DNA from: Paragordius varius
Lineage: Eukaryota; Animalia; Nematomorpha
Direction: 5' to 3'
DNA length: 64,000 bases
Assembly: GCA_964247055.1 (NCBI GenBank)
Contig: OZ176057.1
Coordinates: 1,798,001 to 1,862,000 of the forward strand
How positions within the stretch are numbered: the stretch's first letter is position 1; the number at the start of each line of letters is the position of its first letter. Below, one piece after another: positions 17,305 through 64,000 of this stretch. Both the position numbers and the translations under genes were made by a program. The notes beneath the pieces are model-generated. The model was given only the letters and a program-made list of their open reading frames with translations, was not told the origin of the DNA and did not search any database.

Positions 17305-17428
17305 CTTTTTCAACCAAACGCAACATTTTTAATTTCCGTATGTTGCGTTTGCTTAAAAAATGTTGCGTTTGCTTGAAAAAATGTTGCGTTTGGATGAAAA
17401 AATATTGCTTACTGAAAAATGATACTTA
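17305..17428. mobile_element. Collapsed relic of fold-back element 1
   Basis: Head-to-head copies of the TTTTTCAACCAAACGCAACA / TGTTGCGTTTG.TTGAAAAAA 21-mer, ending in a terminus-like GAAAAATGATAC. Confidence 0.6.
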
Positions 17429-38176: not shown

Positions 38177-39431
38177 CTATAAATTGGAGAATGTATGTAG
38201 CAATTTAATAAATTAAATTTTAGTCTAGTTCAAATTAATATAAAAGATCAAAATAAGTTAAGAATTAAATTTATATATAAACCAGTAGTCAATAATCTTT
38301 ACTGTTTACTGAAAAAAACACCTATTTTGAGGGTATTTTTATTAAAATCTGTTTTAAACTCTGGTAATATAAAAATGTAAGGGTGGAAAAGGGATTGTTT
38401 TTGCGGCAAACCATTTGTCAAGCTATTTTTTGATATGAAATAGTTTAGTAATAGAGCGATATTAAGGTCTCTTTTATTGGTTTTGCTGTGTTAGACGGAT
38501 CATTGACATATATAAAATTCTTGCCATTTCGATCAATGTATTGTTATTTTAATTATTGGGCATTATGTGTATTAAAGGTTTTGGAGCCCCTAATACACTA
38601 TTACCCCTGGTCCCATCAGGCACAAAGAATGGCTTGCCATTGATTTCATCAGGGTGTGTATGGATTGGTTGGCAAGGTAAAATATACAGCTTTGAATTTA
38701 TAATAAGGCCACTTATCTTCAAGCGTCCTAATTCAATGTAACGGGACGTTAAAGGAAGATATCACGAAGAAATATTCGATTATCTATTTTTTATTCTTTT
38801 TATTGTATAAGGTCAATAAACTAGGATATTGGTTTTTCCATTACTTGTAGACGTCCACGAATTGTATTTTGTACGAATGCTTTTTTTCATGTGCTGTTGA
38901 ATTGATGTTGGGCATCATCCAATGCTTGCATTTTATCATATTTGCAATCATAATGCCCATAGCGCGCACCATCATTCACATTGGAAATAACGACTTTTAC
39001 ATTTAGAAAAACTTGTTCAATAGTGTACGTCACCTCATGTTTTACCAGAAAAGGACACCTCATAATTCTGGTGTAAAATGAGAAGCTTATGACGCAATTC
39101 TTTACAAGCAAAAACAAGAAGCAGTTTTTGTGTGTGTTTGTCGTTTAATGTCAATGAAAAAATTTGCGTGCAAAACTTGAGGTGTAAACATTGTTTGTAA
39201 AACGCGAGAATATCTTGGACTATACCTGGTATTTTGTACTATGTGGTAGAGTGGGAGACGGATATAAATTTCAGGGGTATAGAGAGTATAGGAAGACATA
39301 AAAATGAATATACTGTCTAGATTGTATATCTAAAGAATAGGCAATCCGAGGAGAGGAAAAAATCATTAAAAACATATTTATCTTCACGAGGCCGGTCTTG
39401 GAGGAGTTATATCAGTCGATATTATTTTTTT

Positions 39432-42400
39432 ATAAATATATTTACGTTTAGGAGGTGGCTTGGTTGATCGAGGAATAATGGTACTTAGTAGTGCGTTACT
39501 GGCACTCGCTGCATCTATTGTTTAAAAATATATTTATACGTTTAGGAGGCTGCGAGGTTGGTAGAGGTTTAATGGGACTTAGTATTACGGTACTGGCACT
39601 CGCTACGTCTATTGTTTAAAAATATATTTATACGTTTAGGAGGTTGCGAGGTTGGTACAGGTTTAATGGTACTTGGTATTACGGTACTGGCACTCGCTGC
39701 GTCTATTCTTTAAAAATATATTTATACGTTTAGGAGGTTGCGTGGTTGGTACAGGTTTAATGGTGTTTGGTATTACGGTACTGGCACTCGCTGCATCTAT
39801 TGTTTAAAAATATATTTATACGTTTAGGAGGTTGCGAGGTTGGTAGAGGTTTAATGGTACTTGGTATTACGGTACTGGCACTCGCTGCATCTATTGTTTT
39901 AAAATATATTTATACGTTTAGGAGGTGGCTTGGTTGATCGAGGTTTAATGGTACTTGGTATTACGGTACTGGCACTCGCTGCATCTATTGTTTAAAAATA
40001 TATTATTACGTTTAGGAGGTTGCGAGGTTGGTACAGGTTTAATGGTGTTTGGTATTACGGTACTGGCACTCGCTGCATCTATTGTTTAAAAATATATTTA
40101 TACGTTTAGGAGGTTGCGAGGTTGGTAGAGGTTTAATGGGACTTGGTATTACGGTACTGCCACTCGCTGCATCTATTGTTTAAAAATATATTATTACGTT
40201 TAGGAGGTTGCGAGGTTGGTACAGGTTTAATGGTACTTGGTATTACGGTACTGGCATTCGCTGCATCTATTGTTTAAAAATATATTATTACGTTTAGGAG
40301 GTTGCGAGGTTGGTACAGGTTTAATGGTGTTTGGTATTACGGTACTGGCACTCGCTGCATCTATTGTTTAAAAATATATTATTACGTTTAGGAGGTTGCG
40401 AGGTTGGTACAGGTTTAATGGTACTTGGTTTTACGGTACTGGCATTCGCTGCATCTATTGTTTAAAAATATATTTATACGTTTAGGAGGCTGCGAGGTTG
40501 GTAGAGGTTTAATGGGACTTGGTATTACGGTACTGCCACTCGCTGCATCTATTGTTTAAAAATATATTTATACGTTTAGGAGGCTGCGAGGTTGGTAGAG
40601 GTTTAATGGGACTTGGTATTACGGTACTGGCACTCGCTGCATCTATTGTTTAAAAATATATTTATACGTTTAGGAGGTGGCTTGGTTGATAGAGGAATAA
40701 TGGTACTTGGTGTTACGGTACTGGCACTCGCTACGTCTATTGTTTAAAAATATATTTATACGTTTAGGAGGTTGCGAGGTTGGTACAGGTTTTACGGTAC
40801 TTGGTGTTACGGTACTGGTACTCGCTGCATCTATTGTTTAAAAATATATTTATACGTTTAGGAGGTTGCGAGGTTGGTACAGGTTTAATGGTACTTGGTA
40901 TTACGGTACTGGCACTCGCTGCATCTATTGTTTAAAAATATATTATTACGTTTAGGAGGTTGCGAGGTTGGTACAGGTTTAATGGTGTTTGGTATTACGG
41001 TACTGGCACTCGCTGCATCTATTGTTTAAAAATATATTTATACGTTTAGGAGGTTGCGAGGTTGGTAGAGGTTTAATGGTACTTGGTATTACGGTACTGC
41101 CAGTCGCTGCATCTATTGTTTAAAAATATATTATTACGTTTAGGAGGTTGCGAGGTTGGTACAGGTTTAATGGTGTTTGGTATTACGGTACTGGCACTCG
41201 CTGCATCTATTCTTTAAAAATATATTTATACGTTTAGGAGGTTGCGAGGTTGGTACAGGTTTAATGGTACTTGGTATTACGGTACTGGCATTCGCTGCAT
41301 CTATTGTTTAAAAATATATTATTACGTTTAGGAGGTTGCGAGGTTGGTACAGGTTTAATGGTACTTGGTTTTACGGTACTGGCATTCGCTGCATCTATTG
41401 TTTAAAAATATATTTATACGTTTAGGAGGCTGCGAGGTTGGTAGAGGTTTAATGGGACTTGGTATTACGGTACTGCCACTCGCTGCATCTATTGTTTAAA
41501 AATATATTTATACGTTTAGGAGGCTGCGAGGTTGGTAGAGGTTTAATGGGACTTGGTATTACGGTACTGGCACTCGCTGCATCTATTGTTTAAAAATATA
41601 TTTATACGTTTAGGAGGTGGCTTGGTTGATAGAGGAATAATGGTACTTGGTGTTACGGTACTGGCACTCGCTACGTCTATTGTTTAAAAATATATTTATA
41701 CGTTTAGGAGGTTGCGAGGTTGGTACAGGTTTAATGGTACTTGGTATTACGGTACTGGCACTCGCTGCGTCTATTCTTTAAAAATATATTTATACGTTTA
41801 GGAGGTTGCGTGGTTGGTACAGGTTTAATGGTGTTTGGTATTACGGTACTGGCACTCGCTGCATCTATTGTTTAAAAATATATTTATACGTTTAGGAGGC
41901 TGCGAGGTTGGTAGAGGTTTAATGGGACTTGGTATTACGGTACTGCCACTCGCTGCATCTATTGTTTAAAAATATATTTATACGTTTAGGAGGCTGCGAG
42001 GTTGGTAGAGGTTTAATGGGACTTGGTATTACGGTACTGGCACTCGCTGCATCTATTGTTTAAAAATATATTTATACGTTTAGGAGGTGGCTTGGTTGAT
42101 AGAGGAATAATGGTACTTGGTGTTACGGTACTGGCACTCGCTACGTCTATTGTTTAAAAATATATTTATACGTTTAGGAGGTTGCGAGGTTGGTACAGGT
42201 TTTACGGTACTTGGTATTACGGTACTGCCACTCGCTGCATCTATTGTTTAAAAATATATTTATACGTTTAGGAGGTTGCGAGGTTGGTACAGGTTTAATG
42301 GTACTTGGTATTACGGTACTGGCACTCGCTGCATCTATTGTTTAAAAATATATTTTTACGTTTAGGAGGTTGCGAGGTTGGTACAGGTTTAATGGTGTTT

Positions 42401-45400
42401 GGTATTACGGTACTGGCACTCGCTGCATCTATTGTTTAAAAATATATTTATACGTTTAGGAGGTTGCGAGGTTGGTAGAGGTTTAATGGTACTTGGTATT
42501 ACGGTACTGCCAGTCGCTGCATCTATTGTTTAAAAATATATTTATACGTTTAGGAGGTGGCCTGGTTGATCGAGGAATAATGGTACTTGGTATTACGGTA
42601 CTGGCACTCGCTGCATCTATTGTTTAAAAATATATTATTACGTTTAGGAGGTTGCGAGGTTGGTACAGGTTTAATGGTACTTGGTATTACGGTACTGGCA
42701 TTCGCTGCATCTATTGTTTAAAAATATATTTATACGTTTAGGAGGCTGCGAGGTTGGTAGAGGTTTAATGGGACTTGGTATTACGGTACTGCCACTCGCT
42801 GCATCTATTGTTTAAAAATATATTTATACGTTTAGGAGGTTGCGAGGTTGGTACAGGTTTAATGGTACTTGGTATTACGGTACTGGCACTCGCTGCATCT
42901 ATTGTTTAAAAATATATTTATACGTTTAGGAGGTGGCTTGGTTGATAGAGGAATAATGGTACTTGGTGTTACGGTACTGGCACTCGCTACGTCTATTGTT
43001 TAAAAATATATTTATACGTTTAGGAGGTTGCGAGGTTGGTACAGGTTTAATGGGACTTGGTATTACGGTACTGCCACTCGCTGCATCTATTGTTTAAAAA
43101 TATATTTATACGTTTAGGAGGTTGCGAGGTTGGTACAGGTTTAATGGTACTTGGTATTACGGTACTGGCACTCGCTGCATCTATTGTTTAAAAATATATT
43201 TATACGTTTAGGAGGTGGCTTGGTTGATAGAGGAATAATGGTACTTGGTGTTACGGTACTGGTACTCGCTGCATCTATTGTTTAAAAATATATTTATACG
43301 TTTAGGAGGTTGCGAGGTTGGTACAGGTTTAATGGTACTTGGTATTACGGTACTGGCACTCGCTGCATCTATTGTTTAAAAATATATTATTACGTTTAGG
43401 AGGTTGCGAGGTTGGTACAGGTTTAATGGTGTTTGGTATTACGGTACTGGCACTCGCTGCATCTATTGTTTAAAAATATATTTATACGTTTAGGAGGTTG
43501 CGAGGTTGGTAGAGGTTTAATGGTACTTGGTATTACGGTACTGCCAGTCGCTGCATCTATTGTTTAAAAATATATTTATACGTTTAGGAGGTGGCCTGGT
43601 TGATCGAGGAATGGTACTTGGTATTACGGTACTGGCACTCGCTGCGTCTATTGTTTAAAAATATATTTATACGTTTAGGAGGTTGCGAGGTTGGTACAGG
43701 TTTAATGGTACTTGGTATTACGGTACTGGCATTCGCTGCATCTATTGTTTAAAAATATTATATTACGTTTAGGAGGTTGCGAGGTTGGTACAGGTTTAAT
43801 GGTGTTTGGTATTACGGTACTGGCACTCGCTGCATCTATTGTTTAAAAATATATTTATACGTTTAGGAGGCTGCGAGGTTGGTAGAGGTTTAATGGGACT
43901 TGGTATTACGGTACTGCCACTCGCTGCATCTATTGTTTAAAAATATATTTATACGTTTAGGAGGCTGCGAGGTTGGTAGAGGTTTAATGGGACTTGGTAT
44001 TACGGTACTGGCACTCCCTGCATCTATTGTTTAAAAATATATTTATACGTTTAGGAGGCTGCGAGGTTGGTAGAGGTTTAATGGGACTTGGTATTACGGT
44101 ACTGGCACTCGCTGCATCTATTGTTTAAAAATATATTATTACGTTTAGGAGGTTGCGAGGTTGGTACAGGTTTAATGGTACTTGGTATTACGGTACTGGC
44201 ATTCGCTGCATCTATTGTTTAAAAATATATTATTACGTTTAGGAGGTTGCGAGGTTGGTACAGGTTTAATGGTGTTTGGTATTACGGTACTGGCACTCGC
44301 TGCATCTATTGTTTAAAAATATATTATTACGTTTAGGAGGTTGCGAGGTTGGTACAGGTTTAATGGTACTTGGTATTACGGTACTGGCATTCGCTGCATC
44401 TATTGTTTAAAAATATATTATTACGTTTAGGAGGTTGCGAGGTTGGTACAGGTTTAATGGTGTTTGGTATTACGGTACTGGCACTCGCTGCATCTATTGT
44501 TTAAAAATATATTATTACGTTTAGGAGGTTGCGAGGTTGGTACAGGTTTAATGGTACTTGGTATTACGGTACTGGCATTCGCTGCATCTATTGTTTAAAA
44601 ATATATTTATACGTTTAGGAGGCTGCGAGGTTGGTAGAGGTTTAATGGGACTTGGTATTACGGTACTGCCACTCGCTGCATCTATTGTTTAAAAATATAT
44701 TTATACGTTTAGGAGGCTGCGAGGTTGGTAGAGGTTTAATGGGACTTGGTATTACGGTACTGGCACTCGCTGCATCTATTGTTTAAAAATATATTTATAC
44801 GTTTAGGAGGTGGCTTGGTTGATAGAGGAATAATGGTACTTGGTGTTACGGTACTGGCACTCGCTACGTCTATTGTTTAAAAATATATTTATACGTTTAG
44901 GAGGTTGCGAGGTTGGTACAGGTTTTACGGTACTTGGTATTACGGTACTGGCACTCGCTGCATCTATTGTTTAAAAATATATTATTACGTTTAGGAGGTT
45001 GCGAGGTTGGTAGAGGTTTAATGGGACTTGGTATTACGGTACTGCCACTCGCTGCATCTATTGTTTAAAAATATATTTATACGTTTAGGAGGTGGCTTGG
45101 TTGATCGAGGAATAATGGTACTTGGTATTACGGTACTGCCACTCGCTGCATCTATTGTTTAAAAATATATTTATACGTTTAGGAGGCTGCGAGGTTGGTA
45201 GAGGTTTAATGGGACTTGGTATTACGGTACTGGCACTCGCTGCATCTATTGTTTAAAAATATATTATTACGTTTAGGAGGTTGCGAGGTTGGTACAGGTT
45301 TAATGGTACTTGGTATTACGGTACTGGCATTCGCTGCATCTATTGTTTAAAAATATATTATTACGTTTAGGAGGTTGCGAGGTTGGTACAGGTTTAATGG

Positions 45401-48400
45401 TGTTTGGTATTACGGTACTGGCACTCGCTGCATCTATTGTTTAAAAATATATTATTACGTTTAGGAGGTTGCGAGGTTGGTACAGGTTTAATGGTACTTG
45501 GTATTACGGTACTGGCATTCGCTGCATCTATTGTTTAAAAATATATTTATACGTTTAGGAGGCTGCGAGGTTGGTAGAGGTTTAATGGGACTTGGTATTA
45601 CGGTACTGGCACTCGCTGCATCTATTGTTTAAAAATATATTTATACGTTTAGGAGGCTGCGAGGTTGGTAGAGGTTTAATGGGACTTGGTATTACGGTAC
45701 TGGCACTCGCTGCATCTATTGTTTAAAAATATATTATTACGTTTAGGAGGTTGCGAGGTTGGTACAGGTTTAATGGTACTTGGTATTACGGTACTGGCAT
45801 TCGCTGCATCTATTGTTTAAAAATATATTATTACGTTTAGGAGGTTGCGAGGTTGGTACAGGTTTAATGGTGTTTGGTATTACGGTACTGGCACTCGCTG
45901 CATCTATTGTTTAAAAATATATTATTACGTTTAGGAGGTTGCGAGGTTGGTACAGGTTTAATGGTACTTGGTATTACGGTACTGGCATTCGCTGCATCTA
46001 TTGTTTAAAAATATATTTATACGTTTAGGAGGCTGCGAGGTTGGTAGAGGTTTAATGGGACTTGGTATTACGGTACTGCCACTCGCTGCATCTATTGTTT
46101 AAAAATATATTTATACGTTTAGGAGGTTGCGAGGTTGGTACAGGTTTAATGGTACTTGGTATTACGGTACTGGCACTCGCTGCATCTATTGTTTAAAAAT
46201 ATATTTATACGTTTAGGAGGTGGCTTGGTTGATAGAGGAATAATGGTACTTGGTGTTACGGTACTGGCACTCGCTACGTCTATTGTTTAAAAATATATTT
46301 ATACGTTTAGGAGGTTGCGAGGTTGGTACAGGTTTAATGGGACTTGGTATTACGGTACTGCCACTCGCTGCATCTATTGTTTAAAAATATATTTATACGT
46401 TTAGGAGGTTGCGAGGTTGGTACAGGTTTAATGGTACTTGGTATTACGGTACTGGCACTCGCTGCATCTATTGTTTAAAAATATATTTATACGTTTAGGA
46501 GGTGGCTTGGTTGATAGAGGAATAATGGTACTTGGTGTTACGGTACTGGTACTCGCTGCATCTATTGTTTAAAAATATATTTATACGTTTAGGAGGTTGC
46601 GAGGTTGGTACAGGTTTAATGGTACTTGGTATTACGGTACTGGCACTCGCTGCATCTATTGTTTAAAAATATATTATTACGTTTAGGAGGTTGCGAGGTT
46701 GGTACAGGTTTAATGGTGTTTGGTATTACGGTACTGGCACTCGCTGCATCTATTGTTTAAAAATATATTTATACGTTTAGGAGGTTGCGAGGTTGGTAGA
46801 GGTTTAATGGTACTTGGTATTACGGTACTGCCAGTCGCTGCATCTATTGTTTAAAAATATATTTATACGTTTAGGAGGTGGCCTGGTTGATCGAGGAATG
46901 GTACTTGGTATTACGGTACTGGCACTCGCTGCGTCTATTGTTTAAAAATATATTTATACGTTTAGGAGGTTGCGAGGTTGGTACAGGTTTAATGGTACTT
47001 GGTATTACGGTACTGGCATTCGCTGCATCTATTGTTTAAAAATATTATATTACGTTTAGGAGGTTGCGAGGTTGGTACAGGTTTAATGGTGTTTGGTATT
47101 ACGGTACTGGCACTCGCTGCATCTATTGTTTAAAAATATATTTATACGTTTAGGAGGCTGCGAGGTTGGTAGAGGTTTAATGGGACTTGGTATTACGGTA
47201 CTGCCACTCGCTGCATCTATTGTTTAAAAATATATTTATACGTTTAGGAGGCTGCGAGGTTGGTAGAGGTTTAATGGGACTTGGTATTACGGTACTGGCA
47301 CTCGCTGCATCTATTGTTTAAAAATATATTTATACGTTTAGGAGGCTGCGAGGTTGGTAGAGGTTTAATGGGACTTGGTATTACGGTACTGGCACTCGCT
47401 GCATCTATTGTTTAAAAATATATTATTACGTTTAGGAGGTTGCGAGGTTGGTACAGGTTTAATGGTACTTGGTATTACGGTACTGGCATTCGCTGCATCT
47501 ATTGTTTAAAAATATATTATTACGTTTAGGAGGTTGCGAGGTTGGTACAGGTTTAATGGTGTTTGGTATTACGGTACTGGCACTCGCTGCATCTATTGTT
47601 TAAAAATATATTATTACGTTTAGGAGGTTGCGAGGTTGGTACAGGTTTAATGGTACTTGGTATTACGGTACTGGCATTCGCTGCATCTATTGTTTAAAAA
47701 TATATTATTACGTTTAGGAGGTTGCGAGGTTGGTACAGGTTTAATGGTGTTTGGTATTACGGTACTGGCACTCGCTGCATCTATTGTTTAAAAATATATT
47801 ATTACGTTTAGGAGGTTGCGAGGTTGGTACAGGTTTAATGGTACTTGGTATTACGGTACTGGCATTCGCTGCATCTATTGTTTAAAAATATATTTATACG
47901 TTTAGGAGGCTGCGAGGTTGGTAGAGGTTTAATGGGACTTGGTATTACGGTACTGCCACTCGCTGCATCTATTGTTTAAAAATATATTTATACGTTTAGG
48001 AGGCTGCGAGGTTGGTAGAGGTTTAATGGGACTTGGTATTACGGTACTGGCACTCGCTGCATCTATTGTTTAAAAATATATTTATACGTTTAGGAGGTGG
48101 CTTGGTTGATAGAGGAATAATGGTACTTGGTGTTACGGTACTGGCACTCGCTACGTCTATTGTTTAAAAATATATTTATACGTTTAGGAGGTTGCGAGGT
48201 TGGTACAGGTTTTACGGTACTTGGTATTACGGTACTGGCACTCGCTGCATCTATTGTTTAAAAATATATTATTACGTTTAGGAGGTTGCGAGGTTGGTAG
48301 AGGTTTAATGGGACTTGGTATTACGGTACTGCCACTCGCTGCATCTATTGTTTAAAAATATATTTATACGTTTAGGAGGTGGCTTGGTTGATCGAGGAAT

Positions 48401-51400
48401 AATGGTACTTGGTATTACGGTACTGCCACTCGCTGCATCTATTGTTTAAAAATATATTTATACGTTTAGGAGGCTGCGAGGTTGGTAGAGGTTTAATGGG
48501 ACTTGGTATTACGGTACTGGCACTCGCTGCATCTATTGTTTAAAAATATATTATTACGTTTAGGAGGTTGCGAGGTTGGTACAGGTTTAATGGTACTTGG
48601 TATTACGGTACTGGCATTCGCTGCATCTATTGTTTAAAAATATATTATTACGTTTAGGAGGTTGCGAGGTTGGTACAGGTTTAATGGTGTTTGGTATTAC
48701 GGTACTGGCACTCGCTGCATCTATTGTTTAAAAATATATTATTACGTTTAGGAGGTTGCGAGGTTGGTACAGGTTTAATGGTACTTGGTATTACGGTACT
48801 GGCATTCGCTGCATCTATTGTTTAAAAATATATTTATACGTTTAGGAGGCTGCGAGGTTGGTAGAGGTTTAATGGGACTTGGTATTACGGTACTGCCACT
48901 CGCTGCATCTATTGTTTAAAAATATATTTATACGTTTAGGAGGCTGCGAGGTTGGTAGAGGTTTAATGGGACTTGGTATTACGGTACTGGCACTCGCTGC
49001 ATCTATTGTTTAAAAATATATTTATACGTTTAGGAGGTGGCTTGGTTGATAGAGGAATAATGGTACTTGGTGTTACGGTACTGGCACTCGCTACGTCTAT
49101 TGTTTAAAAATATATTTATACGTTTAGGAGGTTGCGAGGTTGGTACAGGTTTTACGGTACTTGGTATTACGGTACTGCCACTCGCTGCATCTATTGTTTA
49201 AAAATATATTTATACGTTTAGGAGGTTGCGAGGTTGGTACAGGTTTAATGGTACTTGGTATTACGGTACTGGCACTCGCTGCATCTATTGTTTAAAAATA
49301 TATTATTACGTTTAGGAGGTTGCGAGGTTGGTACAGGTTTAATGGTGTTTGGTATTACGGTACTGGCACTCGCTGCATCTATTGTTTAAAAATATATTTA
49401 TACGTTTAGGAGGTTGCGAGGTTGGTAGAGGTTTAATGGTACTTGGTATTACGGTACTGCCAGTCGCTGCATCTATTGTTTAAAAATATATTTATACGTT
49501 TAGGAGGTGGCCTGGTTGATCGAGGAATAATGGTACTTGGTATTACGGTACTGGCACTCGCTGCATCTATTGTTTAAAAATATATTATTACGTTTAGGAG
49601 GTTGCGAGGTTGGTACAGGTTTAATGGTACTTGGTATTACGGTACTGGCATTCGCTGCATCTATTGTTTAAAAATATATTTATACGTTTAGGAGGCTGCG
49701 AGGTTGGTAGAGGTTTAATGGGACTTGGTATTACGGTACTGCCACTCGCTGCATCTATTGTTTAAAAATATATTTATACGTTTAGGAGGCTGCGGGGTTG
49801 GTAGAGGTTTAATGGGACTTGGTATTACGGTACTGGCACTCGCTGCATCTATTGTTTAAAAATATATTTATACGTTTAGGAGGTGGCTTGGTTGATAGAG
49901 GAATAATGGTACTTGGTGTTACGGTACTGGCACCCGCTACGTCTATTGTTTAAAAATATATTTATACGTTTAGGAGGTTGCGAGGTTGGTACAGGTTTTA
50001 CGGTACTTGGTATTACGGTACTGCCACTCGCTGCATCTATTGTTTAAAAATATATTTATACGTTTAGGAGGTTGCGAGGTTGGTACAGGTTTAATGGTAC
50101 TTGGTATTACGGTACTGGCACTCGCTGCATCTATTGTTTAAAAATATATTATTACGTTTAGGAGGTTGCGAGGTTGGTACAGGTTTAATGGTGTTTGGTA
50201 TTACGGTACTGGCACTCGCTGCATCTATTGTTTAAAAATATATTTATACGTTTAGGAGGTTGCGAGGTTGGTAGAGGTTTAATGGTACTTGGTATTACGG
50301 TACTGCCAGTCGCTGCATCTATTGTTTAAAAATATATTTATACGTTTAGGAGGTGGCCTGGTTGATCGAGGAATAATGGTACTTGGTATTACGGTACTGG
50401 CACTCGCTGCGTCTATTGTTTAAAAATATATTTATACGTTTAGGAGGTTGCGAGGTTGGTACAGGTTTAATGGTACTTGGTATTACGGTACTGGCATTCG
50501 CTGCATCTATTGTTTAAATATTATATTACGTTTAGGAGGTTGCGAGGTTGGTACAGGTTTAATGGTGTTTGGTATTACGGTACTGGCACTCGCTGCATCT
50601 ATTGTTTAAAAATATATTTATACGTTTAGGAGGCTGCGAGGTTGGTAGAGGTTTAATGGGACTTGGTATTACGGTACTGCCACTCGCTGCATCTATTGTT
50701 TAAAAATATATTTATACGTTTAGGAGGCTGCGAGGTTGGTAGAGGTTTAATGGGACTTGGTATTACGGTACTGCCACTCGCTGCATCTATTGTTTAAAAA
50801 TATATTTATACGTTTAGGAGGCTGCGAGGTTGGTAGAGGTTTAATGGGACTTGGTATTACGGTACTGGCACTCGCTGCATCTATTGTTTAAAAATATATT
50901 ATTACGTTTAGGAGGTTGCGAGGTTGGTACAGGTTTAATGGTACTTGGTATTACGGTACTGGCATTCGCTGCATCTATTGTTTAAAAATATATTATTACG
51001 TTTAGGAGGTTGCGAGGTTGGTACAGGTTTAATGGTGTTTGGTATTACGGTACTGGCACTCGCTGCATCTATTGTTTAAAAATATATTATTACGTTTAGG
51101 AGGTTGCGAGGTTGGTACAGGTTTAATGGTACTTGGTATTACGGTACTGGCATTCGCTGCATCTATTGTTTAAAAATATATTTATACGTTTAGGAGGCTG
51201 CGAGGTTGGTAGAGGTTTAATGGGACTTGGTATTACGGTACTGCCACTCGCTGCATCTATTGTTTAAAAATATATTTATACGTTTAGGAGGCTGCGAGGT
51301 TGGTAGAGGTTTAATGGGACTTGGTATTACGGTACTGGCACTCGCTGCATCTATTGTTTAAAAATATATTTATACGTTTAGAAGGTGGCTTGGTTGATAG

Positions 51401-54400
51401 AGGAATAATGGTACTTGGTGTTACGGTACTGGCACTCGCTACGTCTATTGTTTAAAAATATATTTATACGTTTAGGAGGTTGCGAGGTTGGTACAGGTTT
51501 TACGGTACTTGGTATTACGGTACTGCCACTCGCTGCATCTATTGTTTAAAAATATATTTATACGTTTAGGAGGTTGCGAGGTTGGTACAGGTTTAATGGT
51601 ACTTGGTATTACGGTACTGGCACTCGCTGCATCTATTGTTTAAAAATATATTATTACGTTTAGGAGGTTGCGAGGTTGGTACAGGTTTAATGGTGTTTGG
51701 TATTACGGTACTGGCACTCGCTGCATCTATTGTTTAAAAATATATTTATACGTTTAGGAGGTTGCGAGGTTGGTAGAGGTTTAATGGTACTTGGTATTAC
51801 GGTACTGCCAGTCGCTGCATCTATTGTTTAAAAATATATTATTACGTTTAGGAGGTTGCGAGGTTGGTACAGGTTTAATGGTGTTTGGTATTACGGTACT
51901 GGCACTCGCTGCATCTATTGTTTAAAAATATATTTATACGTTTAGGAGGCTGCGAGGTTGGTAGAGGTTTAATGGGACTTGGTATTACGGTACTGCCACT
52001 CGCTGCATCTATTGTTTAAAAATATATTTATACGTTTAGGAGTTTGCGAGGTTGGTAGAGGTTTAATGGGACTTGGTATTACGGTACTGGCACTCGCTGC
52101 ATCTATTGTTTAAAAATATATTTATACGTTTAGGAGGTGGCCTGGTTGATCGAGGAATAATGGTACTTGGTATTACGGTACTGGCACTCGCTGCGTCTAT
52201 TGTTTAAAAATATATTTATACGTTTAGGAGGTTGCGAGGTTGGTACAGGTTTAATGGTACTTGGTATTACGGTACTGGCATTCGCTGCATCTATTGTTTA
52301 AAAATATTATATTACGTTTAGGAGGTTGCGAGGTTGGTACAGGTTTAATGGTGTTTGGTATTACGGTACTGGCACTCGCTGCATCTATTGTTTATAAATA
52401 TATTTATACGTTTAGGAGGCTGCGAGGTTGGTAGAGGTTTAATGGGACTTGGTATTACGGTACTGCCACTCGCTGCATCTATTGTTTAAAAATATATTTA
52501 TACGTTTAGGAGGCTGCGAGGTTGGTAGAGGTTTAATGGGACTTGGTATTACTATACTGGCACTCGCTGCATCTATTGTTTAAAAATATATTATTACGTT
52601 TAGGAGGTTGCGAGGTTGGTACAGGTTTAATGGTACTTGGTATTACGGTACTGGCATTAGCTGCATCTATTGTTTAAAAATATATTATTACGTTTAGGAG
52701 GTTGCGAGGTTGGTACAGGTTTAATGGTGTTTGGTATTACGGTACTGGCACTCGCTGCATCTATTGTTTAAAAATATATTATTACGTTTAGGAGGTTGCG
52801 AGGTTGGTACAGGTTTAATGGTACTTGGTATTACGGTACTGGCATTCGCTGCATCTATTGTTTAAAAATATATTATTACGTTTAGGAGGTTGCGAGGTTG
52901 GTACAGGTTTAATGGTGTTTGGTATTACGGTACTGGCACTCGCTGCATCTATTGTTTAAAAAGATATTATTACGTTTAGGAGGTTGCGAGGTTGGTACAG
53001 GTTTAATGGTGTTTGGTATTACGGTACTGGCACTCGCTGCATCTATTGTTTAAAAATATATTTATACGTTTAGGAGGCTGCGAGGTTGGTACAGGTTTAA
53101 TGGTACTTGGTATTACGGTACTGGCACTCGCTGCATCTATTGTTTAAAAATATATTATTACGTTTAGGAGGTTGCGAGGTTGGTACAGGTTTAATGGTGT
53201 TTGGTATTACGGTACTGGCACTCGCTGCATCTATTGTTTAAAAATATATTTATACGTTTAGGAGGCTGCGAGGTTGGTAGAGGTTTAATGGGACTTGGTA
53301 TTACGGTACTGCCACTCGCTGCATCTATTGTTTAAAAATATATTTATACGTTTAGGAGGTGGCTTGGTTGATCGAGGAATAATGGTACTTGGTATTACGG
53401 TACTGCCACTCGCTGCATCTATTGTTTAAATATATTTATACGTTTAGGAGGCTGCGAGGTTGGTAGAGGTTTAATGGGACTTGGTATTACGGTACTGGCA
53501 CTCGCTGCATCTATTGTTTAAAAATATATTATTACGTTTAGGAGGTTGCGAGGTTGGTACAGGTTTAATGGTACTTGGTATTACGGTACTGGCATTCGCT
53601 GCATCTATTGTTTAAAAATATATTATTACGTTTAGGAGGTTGCGAGGTTGGTACAGGTTTAATGGTGTTTGGTATTACGGTACTGGCACTCGCTGCATCT
53701 ATTGTTTAAAAATATATTATTACGTTTAGGAGGTTGCGAGGTTGGTACAGGTTTAATGGTACTTGGTATTACGGTACTGGCATTCGCTGCATCTATTGTT
53801 TAAAAATATATTTATACGTTTAGGAGGCTGCGAGGTTGGTAGAGGTTTAATGGGACTTGGTATTACGGTACTGCCACTCGCTGCATCTATTGTTTAAAAA
53901 TATATTTATACGTTTAGGAGGCTGCGAGGTTGGTAGAGGTTTAATGGGACTTGGTATTACGGTACTGGCACTCGCTGCATCTATTGTTTAAAAATATATT
54001 TATACGTTTAGGAGGTGGCTTGGTTGATAGAGGAATAATGGTACTTGGTGTTACGGTACTGGCACTCGCTACGTCTATTGTTTAAAAATATATTTATACG
54101 TTTAGGAGGTTGCGAGGTTGGTACAGGTTTTACGGTACTTGGTATTACGGTACTGCCACTCGCTGCATCTATTGTTTAAAAATATATTTATACGTTTAGG
54201 AGGTTGCGAGGTTGGTACAGGTTTAATGGTACTTGGTATTACGGTACTGGCACTCGCTGCATCTATTGTTTAAAAATATATTATTACGTTTAGGAGGTTG
54301 CGAGGTTGGTACAGGTTTAATGGTGTTTGGTATTACGGTACTGGCACTCGCTGCATCTATTGTTTAAAAATATATTTATACGTTTAGGAGGTTGCGAGGT

Positions 54401-57400
54401 TGGTAGAGGTTTAATGGTACTTGGTATTACGGTACTGCCAGTCGCTGCATCTATTGTTTAAAAATATATTTATACGTTTAGGAGGTGGCCTGGTTGATCG
54501 AGGAATAATGGTACTTGGTATTACGGTACTGGCACTCGCTGCATCTATTGTTTAAAAATATATTATTACGTTTAGGAGGTTGCGAGGTTGGTACAGGTTT
54601 AATGGTACTTGGTATTACGGTACTGGCATTCGCTGCATCTATTGTTTAAAAATATATTTATACGTTTAGGAGGCTGCGAGGTTGGTAGAGGTTTAATGGG
54701 ACTTGGTATTACGGTACTGCCACTCGCTGCATCTATTGTTTAAAAATATATTTATACGTTTAGGAGGCTGCGAGGTTGGTAGAGGTTTAATGGGACTTGG
54801 TATTACGGTACTGGCACTCGCTGCATCTATTGTTTAAAAATATATTTATACGTTTAGGAGGTGGTTTGGTTGATAGAGGAATAATGGTACTTGGTGTTAC
54901 GGTACTGGCACTCGCTACGTCTATTGTTTAAAAATATATTTATACGTTTAGGAGGTTGCGAGGTTGGTACAGGTTTTACGGTACTTGGTATTACGGTACT
55001 GCCACTCGCTGCATCTATTGTTTAAAAATATATTTATACGTTTAGGAGGTTGCGAGGTTGGTACAGGTTTAATGGTACTTGGTATTACGGTACTGGCACT
55101 CGCTGCATCTATTGTTTAAAAATATATTATTACGTTTAGGAGGTTGCGAGGTTGGTACAGGTTTAATGGTACTTGGTATTACGGTACTGGCATTCGCTGC
55201 ATCTATTGTTTAAAAATATATTTATACGTTTAGGAGGCTGCGAGGTTGGTAGAGGTTTAATGGGACTTGGTATTACGGTACTGCCACTCGCTGCATCTAT
55301 TGTTTAAAAATATATTTATACGTTTAGGAGGCTGCGAGGTTGGTAGAGGTTTAATGGGACTTGGTATTACGGTACTGGCACTCGCTGCATCTATTGTTTA
55401 AAAATATATTATTACGTTTAGGAGGTTGCGAGGTTGGTACAGGTTTAATGGTACTTGGTATTACGGTACTGGCATTCGCTGCATCTATTGTTTAAAAATA
55501 TATTATTACGTTTAGGAGGTTGCGAGGTTGGTACAGGTTTAATGGTGTTTGGTATTACGGTACTGGCACTCGCTACATCTATTGTTTAAAAATATATTTA
55601 TACGTTTAGGAGGCTGCGAGGTTGGTAGAGGTTTAATGGGACTTGGTATTACGGTACTGCCACTCGCTGCATCTATTGTTTAAAAATATATTTATACGTT
55701 TAGGAGGTGGCTTGGTTGATCGAGGAATAATGGTACTTGGTATTACGGTACTGTCACTCGCTGCATCTATTGTTTAAAAATATATTTATACGTTTAGGAG
55801 GCTGCGAGGTTGGTAGAGGTTTAATGGGACTTGGTATTACGGTACTGGCACTCGCTGCATCTATTGTTTAAAAATATATTATTACGTTTAGGAGGTTGCG
55901 AGGTTGGTACAGGTTTAATGGTACTTGGTATTACGGTACTGGCATTCGCTGCATCTATTGTTTAAAAATATATTATTACGTTTAGGAGGTTGCGAGGTTG
56001 GTACAGGTTTAATGGTGTTTGGTATTACGGTACTGGCACTCGCTGCATCTATTGTTTAAAAATATATTATTACGTTTAGGAGGTTGCGAGGTTGGTACAG
56101 GTTTAATGGTACTTGGTATTACGGTACTGGCATTCGCTGCATCTATTGTTTAAAAATATATTTATACGTTTAGGAGGCTGCGAGGTTGGTAGAGGTTTAA
56201 TGGGACTTGGTATTACGGTACTGCCACTCGCTGCATCTATTGTTTAAAAATATATTTATACGTTTAGGAGGCTGCGAGGTTGGTAGAGGTTTAATGGGAC
56301 TTGGTATTACGGTACTGGCACTCGCTGCATCTATTGTTTAAAAATATATTTATACGTTTAGGAGGTGGCTTGGTTGATAGAGGAATAATGGTACTTGGTG
56401 TTACGGTACTGGCACTCGCTACGTCTATTGTTTAAAAATATATTTATACGTTTAGGAGGTTGCGAGGTTGGTACAGGTTTTACGGTACTTGGTATTACGG
56501 TACTGCCACTCGCTGCATCTATTGTTTAAAAATATATTTATACGTTTAGGAGGTTGCGAGGTTGGTACAGGTTTAATGGTACTTGGTATTACGGTACTGG
56601 CACTCGCTGCATCTATTGTTTAAAAATATATTATTACGTTTAGGAGGTTGCGAGGTTGGTACAGGTTTAATGGTGTTTGGTATTACGGTACTGGCACTCG
56701 CTGCATCTATTGTTTAAAAATATATTTATACGTTTAGGAGGTTGCGAGGTTGGTAGAGGTTTAATGGTACTTGGTATTACGGTACTGCCAGTCGCTGCAT
56801 CTATTGTTTAAAAATATATTTATACGTTTAGGAGGTAGCCTGGTTGATCGAGGAATAATGGTACTTGGTATTACGGTACTGGCACTCGCTGCGTCTATTG
56901 TTTAAAAATATATTTATACGTTTAGGAGGTTGCGAGGTTGGTACAGGTTTAATGGTACTTGGTATTACGGTACTGGCATTCGCTGCATCTATTGTTTAAA
57001 AATATTATATTACGTTTAGGAGGTTGCGAGGTTGGTACAGGTTTAATGGTGTTTGGTATTACGGTACTGGCACTCGCTGCATCTATTGTTTAAAAATATA
57101 TTTATACGTTTAGGAGGCTGCGAGGTTGGTACAGGTTTAATGGTACTTGGTATTACGGTACTGGCACTCGCTGCATCTATTGTTTAAAAATATATTATTA
57201 CGTTTAGGAGGTTGCGAGGTTGGTACAGGTTTAATGGTGTTTGGTATTACGGTACTGGCACTCGCTGCATCTATTGTTTAAAAATATATTTATACGTTTA
57301 GGAGGCTGCGAGGTTGGTAGAGGTTTAATGGGACTTGGTATTACGGTACTGCCACTCGCTGCATCTATTGTTTAAAAATATATTTATACGTTTAGGAGGT

Positions 57401-60400
57401 GGCTTGGTTGATCGAGGAATAATGGTACTTGGTATTACGGTACTGCCACTCGCTGCATCTATTGTTTAAAAATATATTTATACGTTTAGGAGGCTGCGAG
57501 GTTGGTAGAGGTTTAATGGGACTTGGTATTACGGTACTGGCACTCGCTGCATCTATTGTTTAAAAATATATTATTACGTTTAGGAGGTTGCGAGGTTGGT
57601 ACAGGTTTAATGGTACTTGGTATTACGGTACTGGCATTCGCTGCATCTATTGTTTAAAAATATATTATTACGTTTAGGAGGTTGCGAGGTTGGTACAGGT
57701 TTAATGGTGTTTGGTATTACGGTACTGGCACTCGCTACATCTATTGTTTAAAAATATATTATTACGTTTAGGAGGTTGCGAGGTTGGTACAGGTTTAATG
57801 GTACTTGGTATTACGGTACTGGCATTCGCTGCATCTATTGTTTAAAAATATATTTATACGTTTAGGAGGCTGCGAGGTTGGTAGAGGTTTAATGGGACTT
57901 GGTATTACGGTACTGCCACTCGCTGCATCTATTGTTTAAAAATATATTTATACGTTTAGGAGGCTGCGAGGTTGGTAGAGGTTTAATGGGACTTGGTATT
58001 ACGGTACTGGCACTCGCTGCATCTATTGTTTAAAAATATATTTATACGTTTAGGAGGTGGCTTGGTTGATAGAGGAATAATGGTACTTGGTGTTACGGTA
58101 CTGGCACTCGCTACGTCTATTGTTTAAAAATATATTTATACGTTTAGGAGGTTGCGAGGTTGGTACAGGTTTTACGGTACTTGGTATTACGGTACTGCCA
58201 CTCGCTGCATCTATTGTTTAAAAATATATTTATACGTTTAGGAGGTTGCGAGGTTGGTACAGGTTTAATGGTACTTGGTATTACGGTACTGGCACTCGCT
58301 GCATCTATTGTTTAAAAATATATTATTACGTTTAGGAGGTTGCGAGGTTGGTACAGGTTTAATGGTGTTTGGTATTACGGTACTGGCACTCGCTGCATCT
58401 ATTGTTTAAAAATATATTTATACGTTTAGGAGGTTGCGAGGTTGGTAGAGGTTTAATGGTACTTGGTATTACGGTACTGCCAGTCGCTGCATCTATTGTT
58501 TAAAAATATATTTATACGTTTAGGAGGTGGCCTGGTTGATCGAGGAATAATGGTACTTGGTATTACGGTACTGGCACTCGCTGCATCTATTGTTTAAAAA
58601 TATATTATTACGTTTAGGAGGTTGCGAGGTTGGTACAGGTTTAATGGTACTTGGTATTACGGTACTGGCATTCGCTGCATCTATTGTTTAAAAATATATT
58701 TATACGTTTAGGAGGCTGCGAGGTTGGTAGAGGTTTAATGGGACTTGGTATTACGGTACTGCCACTCGCTGCATCTATTGTTTAAAAATATATTTATACG
58801 TTTAGGAGGCTGCGAGGTTGGTAGAGGTTTAATGGGACTTGGTATTACGGTACTGGCACTCGCTGCATCTATTGTTTAAAAATATATTTATACGTTTAGG
58901 AGGTGGTTTGGTTGATAGAGGAATAATGGTACTTGGTGTTACGGTACTGGCACTCGCTACGTCTATTGTTTAAAAATATATTTATACGTTTAGGAGGTTG
59001 CGAGGTTGGTACAGGTTTTACGGTACTTGGTATTACGGTACTGCCACTCGCTGCATCTATTGTTTAAAAATATATTTATACGTTTAGGAGGTTGCGAGGT
59101 TGGTACAGGTTTAATGGTACTTGGTATTACGGTACTGGCACTCGCTGCATCTATTGTTTAAAAATATATTATTACGTTTAGGAGGTTGCGAGGTTGGTAC
59201 AGGTTTAATGGTGTTTGGTATTACGGTACTGGCACTCGCTGCATCTATTGTTTAAAAATATATTTATACGTTTAGGAGGTTGCGAGGTTGGTAGAGGTTT
59301 AATGGTACTTGGTATTACGGTACTGCCAGTCGCTGCATCTATTGTTTAAAAATATATTTATACGTTTAGGAGGTGGCCTGGTTGATCGAGGAATAATGAT
59401 ACTTGGTATTACGGTACTGGCACTCGCTGCGTCTATTGTTTAAAAATATATTTATACGTTTAGGAGGTTGCGAGGTTGGTACAGGTTTAATGGTACTTGG
59501 TATTACGGTACTGGCATTCGCTGCATCTATTGTTTAAAAATATTATATTACGTTTAGGAGGTTGCGAGGTTGGTACAGGTTTAATGGTGTTTGGTATTAC
59601 GGTACTGGCACTCGCTGCATCTATTGTTTAAAAATATATTATTACGTTTAGGAGGTTGCGAGGTTGGTACAGGTTTAATGGTACTTGGTATTACGGTACT
59701 GGCATTCGCTGCATCTATTGTTTAAAAATATATTTATACGTTTAGGAGGCTGCGAGGTTGGTAGAGGTTTAATGGGACTTGGTATTACGGTACTGCCACT
59801 CGCTGCATCTATTGTTTAAAAATATATTTATACGTTTAGGAGGCTGCGAGGTTGGTAGAGGTTTAATGGGACTTGGTATTACGGTACTGGCACTCGCTGC
59901 ATCTATTGTTTAAAAATATATTATTACGTTTAGGAGGTTGCGAGGTTGGTACAGGTTTAATGGTACTTGGTATTACGGTACTGGCATTCGCTGCATCTAT
60001 TGTTTAAAAATATATTATTACGTTTAGGAGGTTGCGAGGTTGGTACAGGTTTAATGGTGTTTGGTATTACGGTACTGGCACTCGCTGCATCTATTGTTTA
60101 AAAATATATTTATACGTTTAGGAGGCTGCGAGGTTGGTAGAGGTTTAATGGGACTTGGTATTACGGTACTGCCACTCGCTGCATCTATTGTTTAAAAATA
60201 TATTTATACGTTTAGGAGGTGGCTTGGTTGATCGAGGAATAATGGTACTTGGTATTACGGTACTGTCACTCGCTGCATCTATTGTTTAAAAATATATTTA
60301 TACGTTTAGGAGGCTGCGAGGTTGGTAGAGGTTTAATGGGACTTGGTATTACGGTACTGGCACTCGCTGCATCTATTGTTTAAAAATATATTATTACGTT

Positions 60401-63400
60401 TAGGAGGTTGCGAGGTTGGTACAGGTTTAATGGTACTTGGTATTACGGTACTGGCATTCGCTGCATCTATTGTTTAAAAATATATTATTACGTTTAGGAG
60501 GTTGCGAGGTTGGTACAGGTTTAATGGTGTTTGGTATTACGGTACTGGCACTCGCTGCATCTATTGTTTAAAAATATATTATTACGTTTAGGAGGTTGCG
60601 AGGTTGGTACAGGTTTAATGGTACTTGGTATTACGGTACTGGCATTCGCTGCATCTATTGTTTAAAAATATATTTATACGTTTAGGAGGCTGCGAGGTTG
60701 GTAGAGGTTTAATGGGACTTGGTATTACGGTACTGCCACTCGCTGCATCTATTGTTTAAAAATATATTTATACGTTTAGGAGGCTGCGAGGTTGGTAGAG
60801 GTTTAATGGGACTTGGTATTACGGTACTGGCACTCGCTGCATCTATTGTTTAAAAATATATTTATACGTTTAGGAGGTGGCTTGGTTGATAGAGGAATAA
60901 TGGTACTTGGTGTTACGGTACTGGCACTCGCTACGTCTATTGTTTAAAAATATATTTATACGTTTAGGAGGTTGCGAGGTTGGTACAGGTTTAATGGTGT
61001 TTGGTATTACGGTACTGGTACTCGCTGCATCTATTGTTTAAAAATATATTTATACGTTTAGGAGGTTGCGAGGTTGGTACAGGTTTTACGGTACTTGGTA
61101 TTACGGTACTGCCACTCGCTGCATCTATTGTTTAAAAATATATTTATACGTTTAGGAGGCTGCGAGGTTGGTAGAGGTTTAATGGTGTTTGGTATTACGG
61201 TACTGGCACTCGCTGCATCTATTGTTTAAAAATATATTATTACGTTTAGGAGGTTGCGAGGTTGGTACAGGTTTAATGGTACTTGGTATTACGGTACTGG
61301 CATTCGCTGCATCTATTGTTTAAAAATATATTTATACGTTTAGGAGGCTGCGAGGTTGGTAGAGGTTTAATGGGACTTGGTATTACGGTACTGCCACTCG
61401 CTGCATCTATTGTTTAAAAATATATTTATACGTTTAGGAGGCTGCGAGGTTGGTAGAGGTTTAATGGGACTTGGTATTACGGTACTGGCACTCGCTGCAT
61501 CTATTGTTTAAAAATATATTTATACGTTTAGGAGGTGGCTTGGTTGATAGAGGAATAATGGTACTTGGTGTTACGGTACTGGCACTCGCTACGTCTATTG
61601 TTTAAAAATATATTTATACGTTTAGGAGGTTGCGAGGTTGGTACAGGTTTTACGGTACTTGGTATTACGGTACTGCCACTCGCTGCATCTATTGTTTAAA
61701 AATATATTTATACGTTTAGGAGGTTGCGAGGTTGGTACAGGTTTAATGGTACTTGGTATTACGGTACTGGCACTCGCTGCATCTATTGTTTAAAAATATA
61801 TTATTACGTTTAGGAGGTTGCGAGGTTGGTACAGGTTTAATGGTGTTTGGTATTACGGTACTGGCACTCGCTGCATCTATTGTTTAAAAATATATTTATA
61901 CGTTTAGGAGGTTGCGAGGTTGGTAGAGGTTTAATGGTACTTGGTATTACGGTACTGCCAGTCGCTGCATCTATTGTTTAAAAATATATTTATACGTTTA
62001 GGAGGTGGCCTGGTTGATCGAGGAATAATGGTACTTGGTATTACGGTACTGGCACTCGCTGCGTCTATTGTTTAAAAATATATTTATACGTTTAGGAGGT
62101 TGCGAGGTTGGTACAGGTTTAATGGTACTTGGTATTACGGTACTGGCATTCGCTGCATCTATTGTTTAAAAATATTATATTACGTTTAGGAGGTTGCGAG
62201 GTTGGTACAGGTTTAATGGTGTTTGGTATTACGGTACTGGCACTCGCTGCATCTATTGTTTAAAAATATATTTATACGTTTAGGAGGCTGCGAGGTTGGT
62301 AGAGGTTTAATGGGACTTGGTATTACGGTACTGCCACTCGCTGCATCTATTGTTTAAAAATATATTTATACGTTTAGGAGGCTGCGAGGTTGGTAGAGGT
62401 TTAATGGGACTTGGTATTACGGTACTGGCACTCGCTGCATCTATTGTTTAAAAATATATTTATACGTTTAGGAGGCTGCGAGGTTGGTAGAGGTTTAATG
62501 GGACTTGGTATTACGGTACTGGCACTCGCTGCATCTATTGTTTAAAAATATATTATTACGTTTAGGAGGTTGCGAGGTTGGTACAGGTTTAATGGTACTT
62601 GGTATTACGGTACTGGCATTCGCTGCATCTATTGTTTAAAAATATATTATTACGTTTAGGAGGTTGCGAGGTTGGTACAGGTTTAATGCTGTTTGGTATT
62701 ACGGTACTGGCACTCGCTGCATCTATTGTTTAAAAATATATTATTACGTTTAGGAGGTTGCGAGGTTGGTACAGGTTTAATGGTACTTGGTATTACGGTA
62801 CTGGCATTCGCTGCATCTATTGTTTAAAAATATATTATTACGTTTAGGAGGTTGCGAGGTTGGTACAGGTTTAATGGTGTTTGGTATGGTACTGGCACTC
62901 GCTGCATCTATTGTTTAAAAATATATTATTACGTTTAGGAGGTTGCGAGGTTGGTACAGGTTTAATGGTACTTGGTATTACGGTACTGGCATTCGCTGCA
63001 TCTATTGTTTAAAAATATATTTATACGTTTAGGAGGCTGCGAGGTTGGTAGAGGTTTAATGGGACTTGGTATTACGGTACTGCCACTCGCTGCATCTATT
63101 GTTTAAAAATATATTTATACGTTTAGGAGGCTGCGAGGTTGGTAGAGGTTTAATGGGACTTGGTATTACGGTACTGGCACTCGCTGCATCTATTGTTTAA
63201 AAATATATTTATACGTTTAGGAGGTGGCTTGGTTGATAGAGGAATAATGGTACTTGGTGTTACGGTACTGGCACTCGCTACGTCTATTGTTTAAAAATAT
63301 ATTTATACGTTTAGGAGGTTGCGAGGTTGGTACAGGTTTTACGGTACTTGGTATTACGGTACTGCCACTCGCTGCATCTATTGTTTAAAAATATATTTAT

Positions 63401-64000
63401 ACGTTTAGGAGGTTGCGAGGTTGGTACAGGTTTAATGGTACTTGGTATTACGGTACTGGCACTCGCTGCATCTATTGTTTAAAAATATATTATTACGTTT
63501 AGGAGGTTGCGAGGTTGGTACAGGTTTAATGGTGTTTGGTATTACGGTACTGGTACTCGCTGCATCTATTGTTTAAAAATATATTTATACGTTTAGGAGG
63601 TGGCTTGGTTGATCGAGGAATAATGGTACTTGGTATTACGGTACTGCCACTCGCTGCATCTATTGTATAAAAATATATTTATACGTTTAGGAGGCTGCGA
63701 GGTTGGTAGAGGTTTAATGGGACTTGGTATTACGGTACTGGCACTCGCTGCATCTATTGTTTAAAAATATATTATTACGTTTAGGAGGTTGCGAGGTTGG
63801 TACAGGTTTAATGGTACTTGGTATTACGGTACTGGCATTCGCTGCATCTATTGTTTAAAAATATATTATTACGTTTAGGAGGTTGCGAGGTTGGTACAGG
63901 TTTAATGGTGTTTGGTATTACGGTACTGGCACTCGCTGCATCTATTGTTTAAAAATATATTTATACGTTTAGGAGGTTGCGAGGTTGGTAGAGGTTTAAT
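39432..64000. repeat. 94-bp tandem array, ~261 units, runs off the window end
   Basis: The period is 94 bp (e.g. TTTAGG at 39541 and 39635). Units are near-identical, with a small set of recurring variants. Confidence 0.98.
39446..64000 (-). CDS. Mucin-like PTS-rich coding array: 261 complete 69-nt exons separated by 25-nt GT..AG introns, consensus HAASASTVIPSTIKPVPTSQPPK
   Basis: The minus-strand unit is GTATAAATATATTTTTAAACAATAG (or GTAATA...; 12% GC) plus a 69-nt open exon (48% GC). All variants examined are synonymous or missense. The three exon indels are 3 nt and the two intron indels are 2 nt. Confidence 0.75.

Follow-up and report, generated by a model that had tools for sequence, protein, structure and literature searches.

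The stretch of DNA analyzed here, called the window, comprises 64,000 nucleotides (nt) of the genome of the nematomorph Paragordius varius (contig OZ176057.1; G000:C8:1,798,001-1,862,000). From position 39,429 to its end, it is occupied by a tandem array of one 94-bp module. On the minus strand, this module reads as a 69-nt exon block, open only at offset 2, followed by a 25-nt AT-rich GT..AG segment. The array contains a 49-kb run of 526 successive modules, in which frame- and splice-breaking mutations are rarer than expected by chance, and for this reason the run may encode a giant mucin-like protein. It is about as likely as not that selection keeps this run open and spliceable, or did so until very recently, and that the run forms the body of such a protein. 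Transcription, splicing and translation of the run, and the kind of protein it would yield, are what we infer from its DNA.

Structure of the Array

Tandem Repeats Finder detected a single 94-bp array in the window, running from 39,429 to the last position, with a copy number of 261.6 and 93% matches. Its GC content is 39%, against ~27% in the flank, and the array is strongly GC-skewed. An additional 70 kb beyond the window was included, and 81 kb was aligned to a cyclic consensus; the extended coordinates given below carry the window numbering on past 64,000. In this alignment, the array contains ~820 units over 80 kb, far exceeding the window. The search of the whole 110-Mb assembly with a 22-nt core sequence returned 776 matches, all on the minus strand and all at this place. 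The array is a single locus with one orientation.

The blocks of the array are described here from 3' to 5' on the minus strand. The unbroken run (units 341-866; 39,515-88,940 extended) contains 526 units and 12,118 codons in 49 kb, and reaches G000:C8:1,886,940, 24,940 bases past the window end. Its window part (39515..64000, minus strand) has 260 complete 94-bp units, each with GT and AG, an exon length of 69 or 66 nt, and a frame free of stops. From the run end to ~98,940 extended lies a block of the 92-bp subfamily (69-nt exon plus 23-nt intron). It is followed by a second, distal 94-bp block up to ~111,700, further 92-bp units, a 3.4-kb insertion encoding reverse transcriptase (RVT_1, 7e-34), and a final decayed stretch, which ends at ~119,700 and is the 5'-most part of the array.

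Features of satellite DNA are present: head-to-tail copies, concerted evolution, and decayed edges. There are 136 unit haplotypes in recurring shuffled motifs, with older layers upstream. No higher-order repeat period is dominant in the array; the blocks are shuffled motifs. Such a structure may be explained by unequal crossing-over that spreads and shuffles entire modules. The upstream 92-bp blocks and the second 94-bp block would then be decayed copies whose coding capacity was lost.

The insertion corresponds to a non-long-terminal-repeat (non-LTR) retrotransposon with an intact 558-aa reverse-transcriptase open reading frame (ORF) at L013:367-2043 on the minus strand (G000:C8:1,912,367-1,914,043). 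It interrupts the decayed 5' portion of the array and points the same way as the units.

Module Anatomy and Deduced Product

The 25-nt block starts with GTA, has an AT-rich middle, and ends with AATAG. A consensus exon is seen at 63403..63471 (minus strand); its 69 nt are in phase 1-1 and specify 23 residues rich in Pro, Ser and Thr, with G or C at 12, 15 and 6 of the 23 first, second and third codon positions. The adjoining micro-intron candidate (63378..63402, minus strand) resembles in size and style the introns, 22, 23 and 29 nt long, of the SWEET gene described below. The first, second and third codon positions of the consensus exon are 52%, 65% and 26% GC, respectively. The value for the last (26%) differs from that for the first two together (59%; p = 0.012) and matches the overall GC content of the genome. 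Between the consensus sequences of the 94-bp and the 92-bp subfamilies, 10 of 69 exon sites differ, while all 23 intron sites are identical. The GC pattern and the restriction of subfamily differences to exons support at least a coding origin of the module.

For the periodic arrangement of GT..AG, exon length in a multiple of three, and one open frame, 525 of the 526 run units are intact. The deduced product of the run contains 22.5% Pro, 15.8% Ser and 12.6% Thr. The sum is 51%, above the 40% used here to mark tandem repeats of the mucin type, and this mucin-like composition also speaks for a coding origin. The repeat is basic, and acidic residues are absent. If the modules are spliced and translated as one series, the product would be a giant basic protein of ~12,000 residues.

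Mutations in the Run and in the Upstream Blocks

An earlier note on this DNA claimed that mutations in the window part of the array reflect coding and splicing constraint. When units were anchored on a conserved 12-mer, 262 anchors were found from 39,444 to 63,965, with intervals of 256 x 94, 3 x 91 and 2 x 92 bp, and the spacing calculated in the note was reproduced (24,521 + 13 = 261 x 94). Length variants are, as it had described, only 3-nt deletions in exons and 2-nt deletions in introns: all three 91-bp units are short by 3 nt within the 69-nt block, and both 92-bp units by 2 nt within the AT-rich 25-nt block. The in-frame exon deletion at 43557..43647 (minus strand) removed an AAA codon. 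The identical unit at 46844..46934 (minus strand), 35 units or 3,287 bp away, is its copy, and the two represent one deletion event, as the note had cautioned. The third 91-bp unit (62817..62907, minus strand) has a second, independent in-frame deletion of 3 nt. The two 92-bp units have 23-nt introns; 2 nt are gone from the AT-rich middle at 50507..50598, and TT is gone from a T run at 53419..53510 (both minus strand). No stop and no change of GT or AG was found in any complete unit from 39,515 to 64,000, and the substitutions named in the note are present (CAA/CAG, CAT/CAC, GCG/GCT; V/L, T/P, S/N, A/G, P/S).

The observation was thus confirmed. The pattern in the window alone is weak, however, because it includes only ~4-5 independent length events (conditional test p = 0.048). 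The interpretation is partly supported: indel placement, avoidance of splice ends, and depletion relative to a sister block speak for constraint, but the substitution spectrum is neutral and the absence of stops is a weak argument.

In the 526 units of the run, there are 81 distinct exon and 19 distinct intron substitutions. Two indel events are in exons, both of -3, and three are in introns (-1, -2 and -2). The only disruptive change is AG>AA in the unit at 87,160-87,253 extended (G000:C8:1,885,160-1,885,253), which is also the sole splice-site loss. When the 100 distinct substitutions were placed at random with mutation type kept, 6.2 disruptive hits were expected (4.5 at GT/AG and 1.7 stops) against the one seen (P = 0.0025).

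The exon following this AG>AA site begins with ACGTAG, and the AG 6 nt downstream would preserve the frame. Nearly all units have AG at this position, so that models with 31-nt and with 25-nt introns are equally intact.

The upstream blocks show a different spectrum. The 92-bp blocks contain many in-frame stops, 1- and 2-nt exon indels, and losses of GT or AG; ~13 of the 16 exon indel events in this subfamily shift the frame. In the distal 94-bp block, frameshifts arose four times independently, and one deletion has taken out an acceptor. Frameshifts relative to exon substitution events number 0/81 in the run and 17/147 in the control blocks (Fisher p = 0.001; p = 0.014 with private variants only). 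Intron substitutions fall in the first three and last five columns (GTA/AATAG) in 1 of 19 cases in the run and in 12 of 32 cases in the 92-bp subfamily (p = 0.018), the latter being the uniform expectation for intron ends. Stops, frameshifts and lost GT or AG at neutral rates, which the earlier note had named as evidence contrary to its interpretation, therefore occur outside the window in the upstream blocks and not in the run.

These comparisons bear on the possibility that the array is a neutral macro-satellite, derived from one small exon and its micro-intron by a duplication of an exon-intron boundary of the "mirage" type at extreme copy number. Under this explanation, the open frame, the third-position GC pattern and the splice-like ends were inherited from the founder module, and the run is clean as the latest homogenized layer, helped by chance and by its having been selected for its clean look. 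It is a serious competitor, although its probability falls short of even. Mutations blind to frame and splice signals, as expected of a neutral satellite, are found in the 92-bp subfamily but not in the 526-unit run. Age has no influence on the proportion of disruptive to harmless events, but this proportion is 1/106 for the run and 33/215 for the controls (p = 1.2e-5). The distal 94-bp block is as diverse as the run (6.7 pairwise differences per 94-bp unit), yet it has five disruptive events, five times as many as the run, in a quarter of the units. A conditional binomial test scaled by private differences gave p = 0.009 for the whole run; restricted to the window part it gave 0.048, and restricted to the 25 kb past the window end, 0.033. 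The avoidance of splice ends by intron mutations is seen only in the run, and no host gene with an authentic exon was found beside the array in a non-exhaustive reading of the flanks. Overall, one disruptive event is observed in the run against ~6-17 expected, with p between 0.03 and 1e-5 according to the test used.

Within the run, protection is clearest at the intron ends, and a plus-strand frame is open throughout the units. Both would fit a constraint unrelated to translation of the minus strand, such as a spliced non-coding RNA or a plus-strand product. This explanation is very improbable. The limitation of exon indels to multiples of three is explained by translation alone, and plus-strand periodic models lack an acceptor in 104 of 525 units. 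The depletion is more consistent with selection by which the 3' 49 kb (526 modules) would be held open and spliceable, with frame length and intron ends constrained while the amino-acid sequence drifts freely.

Micro-Introns in the Genome

The presence of very short introns in this genome is indicated by a SWEET gene (L015). Normal reading of its protein requires the removal of 23-, 22- and 29-nt GT..AG segments. Exons 2 and 3 match positions 21-44 and 50-86 of MtN3_slv, which are consecutive across the 22-nt segment. The segments are 13-18% GC and start with GTA, like the intron of the array. Introns of 22-29 nt in this genome thus look real, judging from protein homology. Micro-introns and long introns coexist in this genome. 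Animal introns shorter than 30 nt have so far been published only in myxobolid myxozoans and Dicyema (PMC13644364).

Weight of the Open Reading and Gene Ends

Several results weigh against selection on the run as coding sequence. At the codon level, 20 of the 81 exon substitutions are synonymous (25%, against 24% expected). The tabulation by codon position proposed in the earlier note, carried out on the aligned units, revealed no bias (23:35:23), with a ratio of nonsynonymous to synonymous changes (dN/dS) of ~1. The substitution spectrum of the run is neutral by codon. The openness of the frame is of limited weight as well. When the unit was shuffled 3,000 times, one or more periodic GT..AG models with an open frame were possible in 80-87% of the shuffles, and the case must therefore rest on the mutations among copies. 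The real consensus permits five periodic exon/intron models on the two strands together; the plus-strand and alternative minus-strand readings are possible in the consensus but broken in ~100 of 525 units. Only 4 of the 207 possible single changes of the consensus create a stop (1.7 stops expected), and a hydrophobic plus-strand frame (~19 residues for each unit) runs through all 525 units without a stop. For these two reasons, the absence of stops is little evidence.

The beginning of the putative gene is missing from the sequences read. There is no in-frame ATG in the 12,118 codons of the run, and the only one in the whole array lies inside a decayed unit. No unique sequence between blocks that could serve as the first exon was found, and when 3.5 kb upstream of the array was read in three frames, no convincing first exon appeared. 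If broken introns are retained, the last stop is directly upstream of the run and no Met follows it. A rescue of the upstream blocks by exon skipping was also considered and rejected. In the 92-bp blocks, both splice sites are intact in 110 exons, but 52 of these contain a stop or a frameshift, and thus skipping cannot connect a start further upstream with the run. No convincing signal peptide or flanking globular domain emerged when the sequence upstream of the array and at its 3' end was read in three frames.

The searches for copies and relatives were equally blank. No processed copy with an exon-exon junction is present in the whole genome. The protein query was a 55-aa unspliced ORF, which gave no match to 1.84 billion representative proteins and no candidate in a word search among proteins of 30-96 aa. 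Only 25 residues of this query are exon-coded, and for this reason the blank protein searches are not evidence of absence. The surroundings consist of transposon debris and other minisatellites and are poor in genes. Finally, the limits of the run were drawn after the defects were known, the finding was chosen for looking intact, and the neutrality tests overlap with each other. The evidence for depletion, at ~1 in 100 to 1 in 1,000, is accordingly moderate and short of decisive.

The neutral macro-satellite is favored by the codon-level neutrality, the readability of shuffled units, the stop-free plus-strand frame, the missing start codon and 5' exon, and the repeat-rich, gene-poor setting. 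Decayed old layers and a retrotransposon insertion on one side are likewise seen in ordinary satellites. In amphioxus, mirage repeats carry AG/GT without disturbing splicing (PMC3087553).

The signals of constraint combined with the complete absence of a start codon could also be explained if the run is a recently orphaned gene body. Its 5' exons would have been removed, for example by unequal exchange with an older dead tandem copy, and the constraint would be real but past. The decayed units adjoin the run without intervening unique sequence, which fits this explanation. It is nevertheless unlikely. The rare variants of the run, present in one or two units (49 in exons, 10 in introns), include only one disruptive change and no frameshift, which indicates constraint into the very recent past, and no scar of a rearrangement was identified.

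The 3' end of the run offers a short tail and a stop codon. In the last array unit (39421..39514, minus strand) the exon is intact, and no AG follows it because the array stops there; reading through continues for ~20 codons and then reaches TGA. Selection on a coding run would leave room for a living gene with more than 500 successive 69-nt exons, each with a 25-nt intron, and a mucin-like protein of ~12,000 residues. That it is a working gene today is a tentative proposal, and its chance is put below even because no start is in sight. We know of no described gene with nearly as many as 500 exons.

Immediately beyond the downstream end of the array, the strand that bears the units also carries an 85-aa ORF without a Pfam match (window 38,890-39,144, minus strand).

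Comparison with Known Systems

In mucins, the repeat arrays rich in Pro, Thr and Ser (PTS) are normally within one large exon. The deduced product resembles such PTS domains in its 51% Pro+Ser+Thr and in a short, fast-drifting repeat of which only the frame and the composition are kept. It differs in that each repeat would be an exon of its own, and in that no signal peptide, flanking domain or homologue was found. The PEVK region of titin is encoded by dozens of small symmetric exons of the same phase, each specifying one short repeat of a disordered segment. The modules of the array are likewise small, symmetric, of the same phase, and with one short repeat each. In titin, however, the introns are hundreds of bases long and diverged, the exons are far fewer, and the gene ends are well defined.

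The nearest described design is that of the spider silk genes. Nephila Flag and Argiope MaSp2 are composed of iterated exon-intron modules with near-identical introns, homogenized by intragenic unequal crossing-over (PMC1885213). The array shares with them the repetition of exon plus intron, and in the array, too, the intron is better conserved than the exon. The scale is different: the module is 94 bp with a 25-nt intron and is repeated more than 500 times, while in Flag there are about a dozen modules, each of them large and with an ordinary intron. Expression has been demonstrated for silk and is only predicted for the array.

On the non-coding side, the nearest analogue is the amphioxus mirage minisatellites, which are tandem copies of exon-intron boundaries with AG/GT, concerted evolution and decayed edges (PMC3087553). 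The array has the same combination of exon sequence, AG/GT signals, concerted evolution and decayed edges. Mirages, however, have a few to a dozen copies inside an intron beside the authentic exon. The array has ~820 whole modules, no host gene was found in the flanking sequence read, and mutations in its run are non-random.

In myxobolid myxozoans and Dicyema japonicum, there are introns of the spliceosomal GT-AG type that measure only 22-27 nt and whose splice-site motifs are reduced (PMC13644364). At 25 and 23 nt, the segments of the array fall in this size class. They are candidate introns in another animal lineage, in which long introns coexist.

If the run is spliced and translated, the spliceosome of this animal would be able to excise hundreds of identical 25-nt introns serially, and introns shorter than 30 nt would occur in an animal lineage for which no such report has been published. 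Concerted evolution would build and maintain the gene of a giant repetitive protein one module at a time, and selection acting on nothing but length and intron ends would maintain the frame and the spliceability of a satellite-like array. Satellite-like DNA may then conceal coding sequence that gene finders and repeat maskers drop. If the run is not expressed, the array is a natural experiment that needs explanation, since sister blocks of one array would be neutral while another is not.

Neighboring Sequences

In the sequence read on either side of the array, no host gene with an authentic exon was recognized, in a search that was not exhaustive. Transfer RNA and Rfam scans of the window gave no match. 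A ciliate genetic code was considered and rejected; ORFs under translation table 6 merely mirror the AT-richness, and the flanks carry animal-type retrotransposon and hAT debris.

Closely similar fragments of a hAT/ZBED-like ORF (...FDESTD...) flank the 80-kb array on opposite strands, at window 10,433-11,014 (minus strand) and L014:17-274 (plus strand). They could be two copies from a single transposon family, or the arms of a large inverted duplication that frames the array. Three tandem arrays of a 21-bp repeat are present at window 5,508-5,782, 6,644-6,836 and 17,340-17,408. The second and third have the sequence of the first on the opposite strand, so that the three make up inverted arrays ~1 kb apart; they may be terminal arrays of a transposon. 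At window 15,823-17,163, there is a 133-bp minisatellite whose minus strand can also be divided into a 63-nt exon and a 70-nt GT..AG segment, the frame being rich in Thr and Pro.

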